Below, piece by piece: positions 39,936-57,270 of a stretch of 64,000 nucleotides of DNA. The translations under genes and the position numbers were made by a program. Within the stretch, counting starts at the first letter, position 1; every line of letters starts with the position of its first letter. A model generated the notes under the pieces. That model was not told the DNA's origin. It was given only the letters and a program-made list of their open reading frames with translations, and searched no databases. The DNA comes from Blepharisma stoltei ATCC 30299 (taxonomy: Eukaryota > Protista > Ciliophora). The stretch is from the NCBI GenBank assembly GCA_965603825.1, contig CBFDEM010000004.1:558001-622000 (forward strand), given 5' to 3'.

Positions 39936-41780
39936 ATGGAAAAGATTTTAAATGAAATTGATTCTCAGATTAAGCTTGGAAACATCAATATAGCTCTAGA
40001 TAGTCTACAATCCTTAGTCACCAAATATAAAAAGAACCCTGAAATCTTAAAAGAAATATCTCTAAAATTCTACATAACTGGCCAAGAAATCATGAAAAAA
40101 GGTGATTATCGAAATGCAATTGGCCTATGAAAATTCTTATCTCTTTTATTTCCTCCAAGTGGTTTGCAAGACAAAATTTGTGACATAAAAAATGCATTAT
40201 CCTTTTGTTTTAGAGTTCTACGGAAAACCAACGAAGCTATCAAAGAAATTTTATCAGCCATAGAAGCTGCGACCATGCAAACTTCTACCAATTATAAATT
40301 AGCAGCTTTGCATTTAAATGCATGCGCTATTTACAGAGAAGACTTAAAAGACTCAAAATCTGCAATGATTCACGCTGAGCTTGCTTATTTTCATGCAAAA
40401 GAGTCAATTACGCTAGCTCACGTCGATATTTCAGCTGCCAGACATACTCTTGGAGTGACTTATTATAATTATGGGCTTTTAAAAGAAGAAAACAATGAAA
40501 TGTCAACGGCATTGCTGTGATATAGAGAAGGGTTTAAATTTTGCGAAGAATTTGTGAATGATTTGTTTTTGGAGCAAGCTTTTAGAGAAAAGATAAATTT
40601 TTTGGAAGGGAAGTCAAGGCTGTCACCAATCAAATTAATAAATAGAGGGTCTGCGTCTGTAGTCACATCGAGGGCAAAAAGGAAAAAGTCGCCTTATTTA
40701 TATGACGTTGCCAGTATCATAGATAGAAGCAAAATAAGTAGTAGGGCTTTGCAGTCGAGAAAATCGTCATCTTATGGGCCGAGATATAGGCATTTAGATC
40801 CCGGAATGTCAAGGTATGTGATTCCTCCTCATTTTGCTGTTAATAGGTCAGCAGCGCAATCAGAGTATAGCAATAACTCGTCAATCCATCAACATTCCCA
40901 GTACTCACAGCCTGATTCTATGTCTACAATTGAAAGATCAACTGAAGTCTCTGCGAGAACTAGCAAATATAAGATTTCAAAGCCGGCAACAAAAATAAAA
41001 ATCCCTAAAAAAATCAAAGTACAGAGAATTGTTTCGAAGCTTGAAAATAAAATAAGCCCGAAAAATAATTCTGAAGCTGTCAGAAGCAATATCGGGGAAT
41101 CAAAAATTTTTTCTGATGAATTTTATAGACACCAGAAAGCTATAGTAAAAATTCAATCATGGTTTAGAAGCTTAAAATGCCAAGAAATATATGGAAAGCA
41201 AAGAAAATTTTATGATTATATTGCCTTTGGAAAAGCTATTTTAAATGAAGGGTATTATTTTGTAACTGTTTATAGGAGCATTAAGCAGGCACAGTTGAAG
41301 CACCGCTTTATGAGGAAAAAAGTGGAAATTAACGTTGTAGTTGATGCTTTTCCATTAGAAAAAGGATTTCAAAAGCCCTCTGATTTAGATATAAGTTTGA
41401 GTGATATTTGTTTGAGGCTCAGCATTGAATCTGATGAGTTTGAACTAAGAAAAATTCAAGACAGCATAATCGACAAAGTTACGATCAGAGATGGGCATGT
41501 TGATATCAGCAATGAAGAGAAAACTACTGAAAAAATTATATCAAGAATAATTTATATAGGAAAGGCTGCCCTTTCCGATGATGCTGAATATGATTTAGAA
41601 ATGAAATATGTGTTTGGCAAAGAAAAGAAGATTGAAATAATAGCAGTAAACGGGGATTTGATTTATAACTATACAATGCAACTAGATTTGCTACAAGATT
41701 ATGAAACAATTAAAAAAAAAGTGCCATTTATTCTGAGCAGATTATTGATTGAAAATGGATCATTGCAGCTTAAAATATAG
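39936..41780 (+). CDS. TPR + IQ-motif protein
   Basis: Three in-frame ORFs joined by TGA at 40128 and 40518. TPR-like LHLNACAIY and LGVTYYNYG, plus IQ motif AIVKIQSWFRS. Confidence 0.7.
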
Positions 41781-41879
41781 AAAATCAATGTATTTTCATC
41801 AAATTAAATTTAATATATTTAAATATTATTTCTTATAGTTCAATTTTTATATAAAATAATTTAGTTAGCTCCTTTAGAT

Positions 41880-42329
41880 TTATTCATCCCATTTACAGAA
41901 TTCGCATGCGTTAACAACTACTCCTTTGCATCCTCTATCGCCTCTTGGTCCTGTGCATCCTTTAGGTCCTTGTTCTCCGACACATCCAGTAGGACCTTTT
42001 GGTCCTGGGCAGCCAGCAGGTCCACAAGGCCCTTTTGGTCCTTGGCATCCTTCATCGCCTTGGTCTCCTTGTGGTCCTGGGCATCCTTGATCACCTTGTG
42101 GGCCTGGAGGGCCTGGTGGACCTTGTGGGCCAGGAGGGCCTTGAGGGCCAGCAGGACCTTGGCAGCTTTGTGACCCGCCTTTTACTGGTGTAGTATTTTT
42201 AACGAGGGGAGTATTAAGAGCGTTTGCAATTACTGAAGCCTGATTTGTTACTTGCTTACTCTGTAGTAAATTAGGATTAGCAGCCAACGCCGCGACAGCG
42301 AGTACTATTAAAAATGCAGCTCTTACCAT
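41880..42329 (-). CDS. Secreted Cys-rich short collagen-like protein 1 (27 Gly-X-Y), 149 aa
   Basis: ATG at 42329, signal peptide [16 protein letters not shown], 27 uninterrupted triplets GPA...GVV, tail [11 protein letters not shown]. Confidence 0.9.
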
Positions 42330-42364
42330 TATATTATTATATGATATTTTTTTCATTAGTCTCA

Positions 42365-42388
42365 ATATGTTTGAAAATGGTAAAAAAA
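42365..42388 (-). promoter_or_regulatory. Conserved upstream motif, collagen-like gene 1
   Basis: Plus strand ATATGTTTGAAAATGGTAAAAAAA, starting 36 nt upstream of the ATG. Confidence 0.65.
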
Positions 42389-42771
42389 TAGTTTTAATGA
42401 CCCTAAACAGAAATTATATGTTGCATTAGAATCCTATGTAAAAAAAATGATCCGCTCTTAAAAAATTAAAATCAATATCGTTGGTTTTGCCACGTATAGG
42501 AAATTCTTTGAAAAGAATACTTAAAATTAGTCGAATTTAAAGGTAAAAAAAAAATTGAAACAAGCATAGAGTAACTCTCCCAAACGCATTCAATTCTATC
42601 ATAGCTAAAACCTTATTAAAAATATATCAGCAATTTATATTTATATATCCAATTAAGCCATTTTTTATATAAGTAAAGTTTTTTTATTTTATTTCTTGAT
42701 TTTATCCAACCATTAAAATTAAAAATGGCCTTTTTTAACTGATAGGAATATTTTTAATAATTAGTTTAAAC

Positions 42772-43236
42772 TTAGGCATGAATAGCTTCTTCACATGAGC
42801 AATCGTCATCGTCGTATTCTATAATTTTAATGCTGCATCCTTTTGGGCCTGTGCATCCTTTAGGGCCTGGACATCCTTGCGGGCCTGGGCATCCTTGCGG
42901 TCCTTTTGGCCCTTCGCATCCTTGTGGGCCTTGACATCCTTGCGGGCCTTCATCTCCTGGTTCTCCTTGTGGTCCTTTAGGTCCTTTTGGTCCTGGGCAT
43001 CCTTGAGGTCCTTTAGGACCTTGTGGGCCTGGACATCCTTGTGGTCCTTGGCAGCCTTGAGGTCCAGGGCACCCTTGTCTTGTTGTAACGCACTCGTCAA
43101 ATTTTACTGTTTCGGTTTCCACAGCTGGGCAGCCCGATCCTCCAGTTGTTAATAATTTATCTTCCTGTTGTAATAAGCTGGGTTTAACAGCTAAAACAGC
43201 AATAGAAAGTGCTATCAGAATTGCTACTTTTACCAT
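42772..43236 (-). CDS. Secreted Cys-rich short collagen-like protein 2 (27 Gly-X-Y), 154 aa
   Basis: Signal peptide [16 protein letters not shown], 27 triplets GCP...GCS, acidic Cys tail DDDDCSCEE. Confidence 0.9.
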
Positions 43237-43269
43237 TTGATATTATATGCCATTGTTTTTTTAAACTTT

Positions 43270-43292
43270 ATATGCATGCAAATGGTAAAAAA
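43270..43292 (-). promoter_or_regulatory. Conserved upstream motif, collagen-like gene 2
   Basis: Plus strand ATATGCATGCAAATGGTAAAAAA, 34 nt upstream of the ATG. Confidence 0.6.
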
Positions 43293-43570
43293 TAATTAAA
43301 AGTAATTCATATTTTAAAAAATATATATAATTAAACTGAAAAGTTAGAAAATTAGTAGGATTCAGTTGCAAATATTTTTATTAATATCAATTTGATATAT
43401 GATTTTAAAAAATTAATAAAATAAGTGTGACTTTTATATATAAATTTAAGTTATGTATTCTAAATAGGCATCTGTTTTATTTATTCATATTTCAAAAAAT
43501 ACTAGATTTTTTTCTTTTTTAAATAAATTATTAAAAAAATGGCAAATATATAGAAAAATCACTTATGTAA

Positions 43571-44071
43571 TTACCATTGTTTTTGTTCACATTTTATCTC
43601 ATCTCTGTCATCTCTGTCATCATGATCATTGCATGCGCAACTTCTTACAACTTCATCGATTTCCTGGCACCTAATAATAACTCCAGCTGGACCTCTGTCT
43701 CCACAATCTCCTTTTTCCCCTTTGCAGCCTTGCTCTCCACAAAGACCTGCTTCTCCACGTTCTCCTTTGATTCCTGCGCAACCTTGCAGACCTTGGTCTC
43801 CCTTATCTCCTTTTGGACCTTTGTCCCCTTTAGGTCCTTTGCAGCCTTGAGGTCCCTGAGGACCAGGTGGACCTTGTGGTCCTTGGCATCCTTGTTCACC
43901 TCTGTCACCTTTATCTCCTTTTTGATATAAAATTTTTACTTGGCATTCATCTTGTTCGTGTCCACATTGTTGCTGTTGACACTCGTCGCCTTCTAAAAAT
44001 GATCCCTTGAGATTCGGCTTAAATGCAAGGGCGGTTAGGGCGAGAATCATCAGAATTGCAAGTTTGACCAT
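43571..44071 (-). CDS. Secreted Cys-rich short collagen-like protein 3 (27 Gly-X-Y, charge-rich), 166 aa
   Basis: Signal peptide [16 protein letters not shown], 27 triplets GDK...GVI, tail with CAC and DDRDDR. Confidence 0.9.
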
Positions 44072-44103
44072 ATTAATTATCGCATTTCAAAATTTTAGTG
44101 CCC

Positions 44104-44121
44104 ATATGTTTGTAGCATTGG
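44104..44121 (-). promoter_or_regulatory. Partial copy of upstream motif, collagen-like gene 3
   Basis: Plus strand ATATGTTTGTAGCATTGG, 33 nt upstream of the ATG. Only the ATATGTTTG half matches well. Confidence 0.45.
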
Positions 44122-44414
44122 ACAAGATTTAAAGATGGTGGAGAAGACGTTTTCTGATAAATCAGCAATTAAGTATGGCAGTAAAATTCGAAATAAAATA
44201 AGATGGGAGAAGAAAGAGATTTAAATATAGAATATATATATATAAGTACGGATTTATAAGCGATAAGAAGTTAGTGCAATAATGGAAGCGTAGATAAAAA
44301 TATAAGAAAGGTAGGGATTAATCCATGCATATAATTTAATTGAATGAAGAAAATCTTAACTTTGTAGGTTAGGTTTAAACAAAAATCTAGTATTTAAGAA
44401 TTAATAATAATGTA

Positions 44415-46478
44415 TTATCTAATCATCCTATTTAAAATTGCTAAAGAAAGTGGGTTATCATTTTTCATACCTTGCAAACTGTTTTTTAAGTACACAAGAT
44501 TTCTTGAGTGTGACGAGTCTGTATCCTTATCAATTGTTAGTGCTTTTATTATGTTTAGCAAATATTCTATGTCTGCAGCTAGCTGTTTTCCGCCTTGCTG
44601 GCTTAGCTGTTTTATCTGCAAAATTTTTGAAGTGAAAATGCCTAAAAGTGAGTATCCAAGAACAGCAATCCAAAAATGAACATTAAGCCCATGCGGTAAA
44701 TCTTTAGGCGAAGAAACAGAAAACTCAACTATGTAAGCTTTTTCATAATTCATGTCAGGTGAACTGGGTGCCAATTGCTGCAAAAGCCCTAGCAAATGCT
44801 CACCAACAGCTATAATGCTAGGCGATGGGGAAGCTGAAAACTGGGCTACTGGCTCTACTCAAGTTGGAAGAGCATGATAACTATAAAGCTTACCAGCAAT
44901 TGGTAGGTATAAAACTCTAAGAGCTAAATCTTTACTTTCGTCAAGCATTGACTCTAATATTTTTAAAATCCCATTAAAAAACCTCCCCCCTTCTCTTAAA
45001 GTTCTCACAAAATGCTGGCATTTTTTGGCTAAATTCGGATTATTTATTTGTATTGCATCCTGAAGTTCTTTTTGCTCTGTAAATTCTGTTGTGAAATATG
45101 AAGTTGTCATACAGTTTAAAAATTCCTGCCTTATTTTCCCATCAATTCTTTCAACTTCTACATAAAAATCCAACACTTCTTCATAAAACTTTATTGTTGC
45201 TTGGACATCATTTCAGTTTAATTGAAATTGAGTCGAAGGACCTGAAGTAAAGTCAAGATTTGGGAGAGTTTTTATATTATTTTGCAAAACAAAGCTGCTA
45301 ATTTCATTTTTAAATTTTTCTATTTCACTGATCATTGCTTGTTCTATAATCGGACACCATTCTGAAGCCGATGTACCAAGTGTAATTTTCAAACACCTTT
45401 CCCATGAATTTTTGATTTCGTTTAATAAATACTGACTCGATTTTTTCCAATTATCAATGGGATTATCTCTGAAAACTCGAGGAATGTTGGAATTATCAAA
45501 AAGTTTCTTTTCTAGCTGAGTCAGCTTAGTAGAAATTGCAATGATATGCAAAGATATTGGATTTATTGAATTTGTTGCATTTTTCACATAAGAAATCAAT
45601 GATAATAAAGATGTAAAAGTTGGAATAAGTGAATCTATTGGTTGACCTAAAAATAGATCACTAATTCTTTCCTTGCTTAAAATTTGTTCAAATAGTGTTT
45701 CAAGATATGGTGATGGGTCTGGGAAAATAGTTTGAAATAAACTTCCTTCATTTCTGATTCTTTGTAAGACCTCGGAAATCATCTCGTCAAATGTATCAGA
45801 AGTGCTTTTTTGGTAAATTTTTAAGCGATTTCCTACCAAAATTTCTGCAAATTCCATACTATTTTCTAGCTCATTGTAAATTCTATGCAATTTCTTTAGC
45901 TCTTCTCGAGCTTCTTTTTTGCTCATTTCTTCTGTTTTTTTTCTTAGCTTTTCTTTAATTACTCTCATAAAACTTTCAATTTTTTCAACAAATTTTTCGA
46001 ATTGTGGCAATCCTGTCATAAATTTAAGAGATTTCCTCATAGATGCAAACTGTTCTGTAACATTTTCAATATCTTCATTAGAATCTAATAATGCATGCAT
46101 CCTCTCAACTTTGCTTTCAAAAGTTTCTATTTCTTGCAAAGCATTTTTGCAGTCAGAAATCCTTTCTGTAAGAAGATGATCGCGCTTGAGTTCTTCTAGC
46201 TCAGGAGTTTTTAATGATTTGAAAGCGTTTTCGATTCTTTCAGTTTCTTTTATGAGATCTATGGTATCGATAGAGAGAGCTGAGACTTGATCTTTATAAG
46301 ATCCTATATCTTTGAATAAAGATGATGATTTAAATTCAAGGGTAGCTTCGAGATCTTGCTCAAGCAGTTGAAGTTTGATACTTAGAGAGCTGAGTTTTTG
46401 TTCAGGCTGTGAATCGTTTTCTAAAATTGCGTTTAGCCATGATACAGGATCTCAGTTGTCTTGAAATATATCATCCAT
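44415..46478 (-). CDS. COG7: Conserved oligomeric Golgi complex subunit 7-like
   Basis: One frame through TGA at 46452, 45213 and 44859. N-terminus DPVSWLNA...LSSLSIKLQL; C-terminal FSASPSPSIIAVGEHLL and KQLAADIEYLLNIIKAL. Confidence 0.75.
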
Positions 46479-50361: not shown

Positions 50362-51198
50362 ATGAAAAATCTAAGCTATGGAAGAAATGAAGTTTTGCAT
50401 TTGGAGCCAAAAAGACCTTATCGATATAATGATAGATTAAAGAGGAAAGAGTCTAGAGAAAGGACGGTCCCAAAGGAAGTAAAAATGTGTGTGGAGTCAT
50501 TTGAGGACACTAATACGGAGAGCACTCATACAAGGCAGCCAACTATGATTATCAATAATCTCAGCCAAAGCCAGAGGTTTATATCAGCACTCAGCAATGT
50601 TCCGAGTGATGGGCTGCTAAAATTGGAAACTTCGTTGGACTTCTGGGATTATGGAGTCGGGAGTTTAGATTTAAACTTTGAATACGATTCTGATGAATTT
50701 CTGAGTGATATTTCACGCTTTGAAGATGCTGAAAATACCCAAGAGCCTTTAAAGTCATTTACTCAAGACAGTACAAAAAATTCTATAAAACAGTCATTAG
50801 TAGTAGAAAGCAAAAGCTACATAACACATAAAACGGGCAAAAAGACAAAAATTCTCGGAAAATTAAAAGAATCTACCAATGCAAAACCTACCTTAAGCAC
50901 TCATGAAAATGAGCCCGATTCATATCGAGAAAAAAATTATTATTATGGAAAACAATCTGGATCCCCTCAGAGTGATTTTATAAACTATATAACTTCCAAA
51001 GCATATTGTCCTAAATGTCAATGTGAAGTCTCAACTACTGTAAAATTTAAATTTCCCTCAATGACATTGTAATTTTTATTTAGCTGGCAAAAATTGTGCT
51101 GCAGAACTTGCTATGGAAGTGGTGATTTCAAAGAAATTCTTTATCACTGTAAAAAATGTAAGACTCTCATAACAAAAATTAAAAGAAGCAAGAAATAG
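50362..51198 (+). CDS. LITAF-like zinc-ribbon protein (start codon uncertain)
   Basis: CPKCQCEVSTTV, then after a 15-nt intron FWQKLCC...EILYHCKKC, ending at TAG 51196-51198. Confidence 0.7.
51069..51083 (+). other. 15-nt intron
   Basis: GTAATTTTTATTTAG contains the apparent TAA stop. Removal supplies the second CxxC. Confidence 0.88.
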
Positions 51199-55723: not shown

Positions 55724-56233
55724 CTATTTGCTATGAATCTTGGTTGAAACAAAGTTTACTTCACTTGCTCCACATTCATCATTGCAATCTGGTGTTGGAA
55801 CTGACACGCATTTCACGCTTACACCTCTAGGACCTTCGTCTCCTTGGTCACCCTGGCATCCTGCGCAACCTTGAGGGCCTTGACATCCGACTTCTCCATC
55901 TGGTCCTTTTGGTCCGTCTTCTCCTTTTGGTCCTCTTGGGCCTTTACAACCTTTAAGTCCACATGGTCCGCATGGTCCTGGACATCCTTGTGGTCCACAT
56001 GGTCCGCATGGACCTGGTGGACCTTGTGGTCCTGTTGGTCCTTGTGGTCCTACTGGTCCAGCACAAACATCATCGATTTTTTCGTCATATTCAAAGCATT
56101 CTTCTGCTTTACAACCTCCACATCCATCATCGACTCCTTGAATTAACCCAGTATTTTTTACTTGCTTAAATAAAGTTGGTTTGACTGCCGATACAGCAAT
56201 AAAGAGTGCGATAAGAATTGCAATCCTAGCCAT
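55724..56233 (-). CDS. Secreted Cys-rich short collagen-like protein 4 (27 Gly-X-Y), 169 aa
   Basis: Signal peptide [20 protein letters not shown]...ECF N-terminal region, 27 triplets GPV...GVS. Confidence 0.9.
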
Positions 56234-56266
56234 TATGTTATATTATACCAGTATTTCATCGTGCTA

Positions 56267-56290
56267 ATATGTTTATAAATGGTGAAAAAA
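56267..56290 (-). promoter_or_regulatory. Conserved upstream motif, collagen-like gene 4
   Basis: Plus strand ATATGTTTATAAATGGTGAAAAAA, 34 nt upstream of the ATG. Confidence 0.65.
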
Positions 56291-56725
56291 AATATAAATA
56301 GTCCTATCAGAATTATGTAGCATTAAAATGGATTATTTTAGCAATGAAAATTATTAAAATATTTCATTAGAGCTATTTTTTGATTTCAATTTATTAGAAC
56401 TTGTAGTGACTTTCTTCATTATAAAGTTTTTATACTTGTTTAATGCAATCTATATTAGTTTGCCAAGAGTCATAAATAGTTCAATAATTCGAAAAATAAC
56501 CTATAAACGATAAAAAATTTTAAATAAGCAATTTCGAATCAATATAAATAGGCCTAAATAATTAAATTTGCTTTTAGGTTAGAGCATAATCATAATTTCA
56601 AAGAAATTCATAATTTATAAATGCTAAGCAAATCATATGTTTTTCTTTAAAATTTATCTTTCGTGAGTTTATTTTAGTTTGATGGTTATAGTGCAATGTA
56701 GCCGAATAATTATAGTTAATTAAAT

Positions 56726-57214
56726 TTAATTTGCTCCGCATTCATTATTGCAATCTGGTGTTGGAACTGACACGCATTTCACGCTTACACCTCTAGGACC
56801 TTCGTCTCCTTGGTCACCCTGGCATCCTGCACAACCTTGAGGGCCTTGACATCCGACTTCTCCATCTGGTCCTTTTGGTCCGTCTTCTCCTTTTGGTCCT
56901 CTTGGGCCTTTACAACCTTTAAGTCCACATGGTCCGCATGGTCCTGGACATCCTTGTGGTCCACATGGTCCGCATGGGCCTGGTGGACCTTGTGGTCCTG
57001 TTGGTCCTTGTGGTCCTACTGGTCCAGCACAAACATCATCGATTTCTTCGTCAAATTCAAAGCATTCTTCTGCTTTACAATCGCCACATTGTCCTTCACC
57101 AACTCCTTGAATTAGCCCAGTATTTTTAACTTTGCCATCTTCTTGCTTAAATAAGCTTGGTTTGACTGCCGATACAGCAATGAAGAATATGACAAGAATT
57201 GCAATTTTGACCAT
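56726..57214 (-). CDS. Secreted Cys-rich short collagen-like protein 5, tandem paralog of protein 4, 162 aa
   Basis: Collagen domain is identical in amino-acid sequence to gene 4, at a DNA offset of 966 bp. Confidence 0.9.
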
Positions 57215-57246: not shown

Positions 57247-57270
57247 ATATGTTTGCAAATGGTGAAAAAA
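57247..57270 (-). promoter_or_regulatory. Conserved upstream motif, collagen-like gene 5
   Basis: Plus strand ATATGTTTGCAAATGGTGAAAAAA, 33 nt upstream of the ATG. Confidence 0.65.

Follow-up and report, generated by a model that had tools for sequence, protein, structure and literature searches.

What do cysteines do inside a collagen helix? A locus of the ciliate Blepharisma stoltei raises this question. It encodes small collagen-like proteins with many cysteines within their Gly-X-Y repeats. The original prediction was that a cysteine at triplet 9 forms an in-register disulfide anchor, and that cysteine positions shared by some chains set chain partners or cross-link neighboring helices. 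Our own reading, to which we give slightly better than even chances, is that three of the chains form an ABC heterotrimer registered by bridges between Y-position and X-position cysteines (Y-X bridges) and polymerized through cysteines that face outward.

Five collagen-like genes in the window belong to a family of 13

A six-frame scan and codon map of the window (the whole 64,000-nucleotide stretch of DNA analyzed here) revealed five uninterrupted Gly-X-Y runs of 27 triplets, every one on the minus strand. Each chain is encoded by a single-exon open reading frame of about 150 to 170 amino acids with a hydrophobic, signal-peptide-like start. Sequence and a single-chain model place a hydrophobic N-terminal helix at residues 2 to 17 of a window chain. 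The genes are as follows, with X-Cys and Y-Cys denoting cysteines at the X and Y positions of a triplet.

41880..42329, minus strand: chain 1 gene; signal-peptide-like N-terminus; helix 41916-42158; six X-Cys and one Y-Cys; C-terminal CxxC
42772..43236, minus strand: chain 2 gene; helix 42832-43074; ten X-Cys and no Y-Cys; acidic C-terminal tail with CxC
43571..44071, minus strand: chain 3 gene; helix 43676-43918; four X-Cys and two Y-Cys; K/D/E-rich helix
55724..56233, minus strand: chain 4 gene; helix 55817-56059; X-Cys at triplets 9, 13, 20, 22, and 23; Y-Cys at triplets 6, 7, 10, and 11
56726..57214, minus strand: chain 5 gene; recent tandem duplicate of chain 4; helix 56783-57025

Chains 4 and 5 (55724-57214) lie outside the region 41900-44000 to which the original prediction was assigned. 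Their helices are identical in protein sequence, and dS between them is 0.03. All five chains match PF01391 (53.7 to 60.2 bits; cutoff, 27.2), which is their sole Pfam match. The C-terminal flanks of the window chains are 11 to 35 amino acids long and contain no trimerization domain such as COLFI, NC1, or C1q detectable with Pfam. The flanks have one to four irregular cysteines each, which do not align between chains, together with CxxC, CxC, and acidic stretches, and no proline runs.

We extended the analysis to the genome (41.46 Mb, 64 contigs) by protein, Pfam, and pattern searches. The published B. stoltei macronuclear genome is 41 Mbp in 64 sequences, with UGA encoding Trp (PMC9942806). 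There were 13 family members: five in the window, three on contig C53, two on C3, and one each on C34, C48, and C50. Full-length chains have 27 triplets per helix, with 28 in the C53 copy of chain 1, and the C50 helix has 20. Two other candidates were rejected, a pattern match on C24 that lies outside any collagen open reading frame and a Pfam match on C12 that is an off-frame charged repeat. Three family members have long Ser/Gln-rich C-terminal tails (loci include L051:3981-4772 on C48 and L049:4840-6531 on C3), and the C48 chain has no helix cysteine and nine tail cysteines.

The C53 genes are a second trio that keeps the window order 3-2-1. In a tree, chains 1, 2, and 3 each pair with their C53 counterpart, and chain 4 pairs with chain 5, all with full support. 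The C53 segment also carries a copy of a gene neighboring the window trio (window 50362-51072; L047:1936-2634), and C3 and C34 likewise have a flanking gene in common. These shared flanking genes, with dS of about 0.55 to 1.0, point to an old segmental or whole-genome duplication. In chain 1, the triplet directly before the helix (42159-42164, minus strand) has Ser for Gly, and after the helix there is apparently one triplet more than in the C53 paralogue. Total length is thereby kept near 27 to 28 triplets, which suggests selection on rod length.

The genes are conserved and share an upstream motif

Helix dN/dS was 0.12 to 0.27, and 0.12 to 0.22 for the duplicated trio. Residue retention between duplicate copies was 0.89 for Cys, 0.83 for Pro, and 0.68 for other residues. 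As far as sequence can tell, these values support the view that the window chains come from real genes for secreted proteins, kept by purifying selection. In four putative RNA runs, contigs span coding sequence of chains 1, 2, and 3 and leave the spacers between them uncovered. Chain 1 was covered in four runs, chain 2 by one contig piece in one run, and chain 3 in two. Such coding-only coverage is consistent with transcription. Two of the four runs show many single-letter differences from the assembly across window 40400-46200 and apparently represent a second strain.

A 22-nt motif precedes six family genes by a few tens of bases, at these sites.

42365..42386, minus strand: upstream motif of chain 1, candidate shared promoter element
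43270..43291, minus strand: upstream motif of chain 2, candidate shared promoter element
56267..56288, minus strand: upstream motif of chain 4, candidate shared promoter element
57247..57268, minus strand: upstream motif of chain 5, candidate shared promoter element
C53 716716-716735 and 717540-717561: upstream motif of two C53 paralogues

A pattern built from these six sites has no match in the remainder of the genome. The rest of the 41 Mb holds only two further, looser matches, each with three mismatches and unrelated. They were rejected as family promoters because they lie inside opposite-strand coding regions. In chain 3-type genes, the upstream motif has diverged. The motif is a candidate co-regulation element.

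Helix cysteines are dense, and triplet 9 is conserved

The helices of chains 1 to 5 contain 7, 10, 6, 9, and 9 cysteines. The counts stated for the four chain types (7, 10, 6, and 9) were exact, as were their triplet 9 assignments (GCP, GCP, GCK, and GCP); chain 5 also has GCP. The cysteine positions described as common to chain subsets (triplets 13, 16, 20, 22, and 23) were all found, and the Y position is dominated by Q, K, or R as claimed (64/108 triplets), with Pro in 14/108, a share of 13% in the window chain types. A Q/K/R-rich Y position is ordinary among non-animal collagen-like proteins. In chains 1 to 3, the triplet 9 cysteines are located as follows.

42081..42083, minus strand: triplet 9 X-Cys of chain 1, outward-facing and predicted to be intermolecular
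42997..42999, minus strand: triplet 9 X-Cys of chain 2
43841..43843, minus strand: triplet 9 X-Cys of chain 3

When the four window types were considered alone, an X-Cys column common to all four arose in 6% of shuffles, which is not significant, so the window types alone are weak evidence. We also aligned the homologs by triplet number and compared them with shuffled controls. Triplet 9 was conserved (P = 0.0016 to 0.0002 when each lineage contributed a single chain), and the cysteine recurred in all three of the independent new chains (P = 0.003), in shuffles that leave common descent in place among chain types 22 to 48% identical at X and Y. The cysteine had been called invariant. This is slightly too strong, because it is present in 11 of the 12 full-length chains and the C48 paralogue has GPQ. 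No other cysteine column is shared by more than 6 of the 12 chains. Pro at X6 and X7 is conserved in all 12, on a par with or above Cys at X9. Therefore, triplet 9 closes a conserved Pro-rich block.

Family-wide, there are 81 helix cysteines in 324 triplets, or 25 per 100, with 61 at X and 20 at Y. Other collagen-like matches had 24 in 8,742 triplets, 36 in 7,001, and 13 in 30,695 (0.04 to 0.5 per 100). Five loci labeled as human gut metagenome were kept out of the calculations for caution's sake. Dense helix cysteine is a rare trait, although it is not unique (see Discussion). A periodicity of 3.5 or 7 triplets in the X-Cys (9, 13, 16, 20, and 23, on two faces) was considered and rejected (P = 0.08 uncorrected and 0.37 without triplet 9). 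In chains 4 and 5, Y-Cys at triplets 6, 7, 10, and 11 flank the triplet 9 X-Cys almost symmetrically (window 55961-56008 and 56927-56974, minus strand). This cluster matches no pairing within a helix and may be a patch devoted to cross-linking or to metal binding.

Helix geometry argues against an in-register anchor

We modeled ideal triple helices of 7/2 and 10/3 symmetry from starting dihedrals that were tuned to twist, rise, and a 2.95-Å hydrogen bond. The model reproduces the published homotrimer rule for Y-G-X pairs, with two axial contacts and one lateral. For X-Cys at the same triplet of adjacent chains, the modeled CB-CB distance was 8.8 Å and the closest S-S distance was 7.4 Å, with the third pair about 11 Å apart. 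The lateral Y-to-X pair was the sole one at bonding distance (CB-CB, 5.2 Å; S-S, 2.1 Å), and its disulfide was strained in the rigid model (C-S-S of about 145 degrees; chi3 of -20 to -55). Axial pairs had S-S spacings of 4 to 5 Å, and X-Cys sulfurs lay 5 to 6.6 Å off the axis, facing outward. In agreement, a review describes X-X and Y-Y cysteines as too distant to bond and Y-X as a special case with two human instances, and it reports that most helix cysteines bond other molecules or oxidize to unreactive forms (PMC13138384). Engineered Cys or homocysteine bridges are reported to have been destabilizing or of negligible effect (10.1101/2024.09.30.615841).

With X-X sulfurs at least 7.4 Å apart, neither a triplet 9 anchor nor same-triplet pairs can form in an intact helix, and three triplet 9 cysteines, being an odd number, cannot all pair among themselves. 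An in-register interchain disulfide anchor at triplet 9, with same-triplet cysteines choosing partners, is therefore very unlikely, even though 11 of 12 chains have the cysteine. There is a precedent in the cystine knots of collagens III and IV, where interchain disulfides likewise hold register and nucleate folding and refolding (PMC12107170). However, those knots use two cysteines per chain, inside an interruption in collagen IV and C-terminally in collagen III, whereas triplet 9 offers a single cysteine in an uninterrupted helix. An anchor there would also require local unwinding in the most Pro-rich segment. Partner-setting cysteines probably do exist, as Y(n)-to-X pairs between different triplets.

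The proposed cross-linking of neighboring helices holds up as a likely role, since X-Cys face outward and are unable to bond each other within the helix. Clostridial BclA-like proteins of the homotrimeric type also have cysteine at X only, as expected for links between molecules. We consider intermolecular bonding of the X-Cys likely.

The strain of the Y-X disulfide and the availability of axial spacings of 4 to 5 Å might instead mean that the cysteines are not disulfide bonded. They could bind Zn, Cu, or Cd between thiolates, or the rigid rod could present thiols for redox chemistry or for trapping pigment, and the CxxC, CxC, and acidic stretches of the flanks would fit such a role. However, the signal peptides lead to an oxidizing endoplasmic reticulum (ER), where exposed helix cysteines oxidize (PMC13138384), and most X-Cys have no intrahelix neighbor. 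This makes a metal or thiol function improbable.

It is also highly improbable that the chains form no stable triple helix and instead stay extended as single chains or collapse into polypeptides held by disulfides. They have only 27 triplets, little Y-position Pro, and no trimerization domain, and a single-chain AlphaFold2 prediction of a window chain (monomer pTM, 0.15) was uninformative. No collagen-type prolyl hydroxylase was found in the genome. PF13640 (2OG-Fe(II) dioxygenase) had one match, on C62 (L133:1102-1938), with an in-frame TGA and no evident signal peptide, so it is unlikely to be a collagen prolyl hydroxylase. PF03171 and PF08336 had no match in an exon-by-exon search, which can miss intron-split genes and in which the PF08336 control matched nothing anywhere. 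Hydroxyproline is probably minor in these chains, judging by their sequences, but hydroxyproline-free bacterial collagens do fold (PMC8968730). Furthermore, Gly is invariant at every third position, yet Gly codons differ at 12 to 15 of 27 triplets between duplicates. Helix length is fixed, and intrachain neighboring cysteines are beyond bonding distance in the modeled extended chain too.

One register of chains 1, 3, and 2 sets every Y-Cys of two trios beside an X-Cys

We enumerated every chain order and register for Y-Cys that laterally meet X-Cys. In the cyclic order 1-3-2 with offsets of +1, +1, and -1, each of the three Y-Cys in the window trio meets an X-Cys, and these pairs are predicted.

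42024..42026, minus strand: chain 1 Y15 Cys, predicted lateral partner chain 3 X16 (43778-43780)
43739..43741, minus strand: chain 3 Y20 Cys, predicted lateral partner chain 2 X21 (42889-42891)
43703..43705, minus strand: chain 3 Y24 Cys, predicted lateral partner chain 2 X25 (42853-42855)

In the same register, all five Y-Cys of the C53 trio are matched. The extra pairs are chain 1 Y3 with chain 3 X4 and chain 2 Y14 with chain 1 X13, and the X partners of both also exist in the window chains. Together, the two trios have 8/8 Y-Cys matched in one register by five distinct pairs. For the window trio alone, the match is not significant (P = 0.14 to 0.48). For both trios, when the null was given the same choice of registers, P was 0.006 to 0.019 when triplets were shuffled and 0.004 to 0.03 when only Y-Cys were moved and axial geometry was also allowed, for a pattern that was recognized post hoc and rests on those five pairs. 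Among 2190 compositions and registers over 11 chains, 8 satisfy all Y-Cys, and all are the 1-3-2 arrangement with paralogues swapped. The sole complete solution thus coincides with the clustered, co-retained trio.

The 1-3-2 register moves chain 1 one triplet off the homology alignment. Counting chain 1 from the additional N-terminal triplet that its C53 copy keeps intact makes this register equal to the normal one-residue stagger in the order 2-1-3. The triplet 9 cysteines are then two residues apart in height and out of register. Axial salt bridges give the 1-3-2 register no support (4 and 8, versus means of 5.7 and 7.0), and salt bridge complementarity was rejected as a selector because no register was singled out. 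The Y-Cys of chains 4 and 5, C34, and C3b fit no Y-X scheme.

There might be no partner code at all. The chains would then form homotrimers or indiscriminately mixed trimers, every cysteine would serve random intermolecular cross-links, triplet 9 would be kept by descent as the end of a Pro-rich nucleation block, and the Y-X match would be coincidental. The window trio is indeed not significant by itself, Pro at X6 and X7 matches Cys at X9 in conservation, C48 and C50 do without helix cysteines, and the Y-Cys of chains 4 and 5 are unmatched. Against this are the joint P of 0.004 to 0.03, the co-clustered trio as the sole complete solution, and the retention of that trio as a unit after duplication. 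We consider the absence of a code unlikely, and a heterotrimer code in the clustered trio an even bet.

DISCUSSION

In heterotrimeric collagens, non-collagenous domains normally determine which chains associate and how they are staggered. Metazoan fibrillar, network, and FACIT collagens have a non-collagenous trimerization domain, whereas the B. stoltei chains have no recognizable one. Cnidarian minicollagens (Hydra N-COL 1-4; PMC2289959) resemble the ciliate chains in their small size and in combining a short central Gly-X-Y helix with cysteines. They are secreted and proposed to form a disulfide-polymerized capsule network, as may be the case for the ciliate chains. However, their helix is 14 to 16 triplets long (PMC2289959) versus 27 to 28 in the full-length ciliate chains. 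They have polyproline arms, which are missing from the ciliate flanks. Their cysteines are in conserved terminal Cys-repeat domains, whereas the ciliate chains have short irregular cysteine flanks and most of their cysteines inside the helix. No sequence homology to minicollagens was found beyond the Gly-X-Y repeat.

Y-to-X geometry between staggered chains is also found in collagen IV alpha345 and otolin-1 (PMC13138384). The human cases are one pair near the helix border in collagen IV and two cysteines in one triplet in otolin-1 (PMC13138384). In contrast, three to five Y-X pairs per 27 triplets are predicted for the ciliate trimer, over two to three interfaces and with no NC domain.

Dense G-C-x triplets in an uninterrupted helix, with GPQ and GPK triplets and independence from hydroxyproline, also occur in clostridial BclA-type proteins (L148:1261-2019, L151, and L147). 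A pattern scan of prokaryotic genomes found their cysteines at X only, in 10/28 and 16/45 triplets. Unlike the ciliate window chains, L148 ends in a BclA_C domain. The clostridial look-alikes are simple tandem repeats with no signal peptide seen, no conserved cysteine position, and no Y-X code, and collagen-like proteins from prokaryotes form homotrimers (PMC8968730). The likeness is probably convergent. These clostridial proteins are possibly a disulfide-cross-linked spore surface class. An AT-rich metagenome contig, possibly from a giant virus, has a 75-triplet collagen-like run with 17 cysteines at X and Y (L062:1487-2743).

Searches for relatives beyond the B. stoltei genome (word, a profile search of 1.84 billion representatives, the chain 3 C-terminus region, metagenome, viral pattern, and Atlas) yielded nothing beyond generic collagen repeats. 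Low-complexity matches overwhelmed these searches, and the protein collection used lacks most members of the family, so relatives elsewhere may have been missed. Literature searches found no description of collagen-like proteins for Blepharisma, Stentor, or ciliates.

We infer the following assembly, including triple-helix formation, the heterotrimer, every disulfide, and the location. The chains would enter the ER and form triple-helical rods of about 23 nm, with no need for hydroxyproline or a recognizable trimerization domain. They are very probably secreted triple-helical structural proteins. Chains 1, 3, and 2 would form one ABC heterotrimer in one register, its composition fixed by Y-X bridges. 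This reading draws on the uninterrupted helices of equal length, the trio order kept after duplication, and the retention of Cys above all other residues. Rather than raise the melting point, these strained bridges would choose partners and fix the chains in one register. The X-Cys (61/81, triplet 9 included) would face out and form disulfides to neighboring rods or other matrix proteins, in the oxidizing secretory pathway or after secretion, and triplet 9 would be the one site for such links that almost every chain type has. About 17 of the 20 X-Cys per window trimer would be left outward and, with the flank cysteines, might build a disulfide network. The secretion, chemistry, and upstream motif that the genes have in common suggest that this network is most likely cyst wall or extrusome material. 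B. stoltei forms a layered cyst wall (PMC8891572).

The full proposal is that a single-celled non-animal makes an ABC heterotrimer in which Y-X bridges inside the helix encode composition and register, without a trimerization domain, and then links it into a hydroxyproline-free X-Cys network. We advance it tentatively, at somewhat less than even chances. If it is true, a natural 27-triplet trimer would make the encoding of composition and register by helix cysteines directly testable. It would also offer a compact hydroxyproline-free design for defined heterotrimers and for collagen materials set by disulfides. Helix cysteines that lock three different chains in a defined order would be a new way of assembling collagen, and a ciliate would gain a collagen-based extracellular structure.
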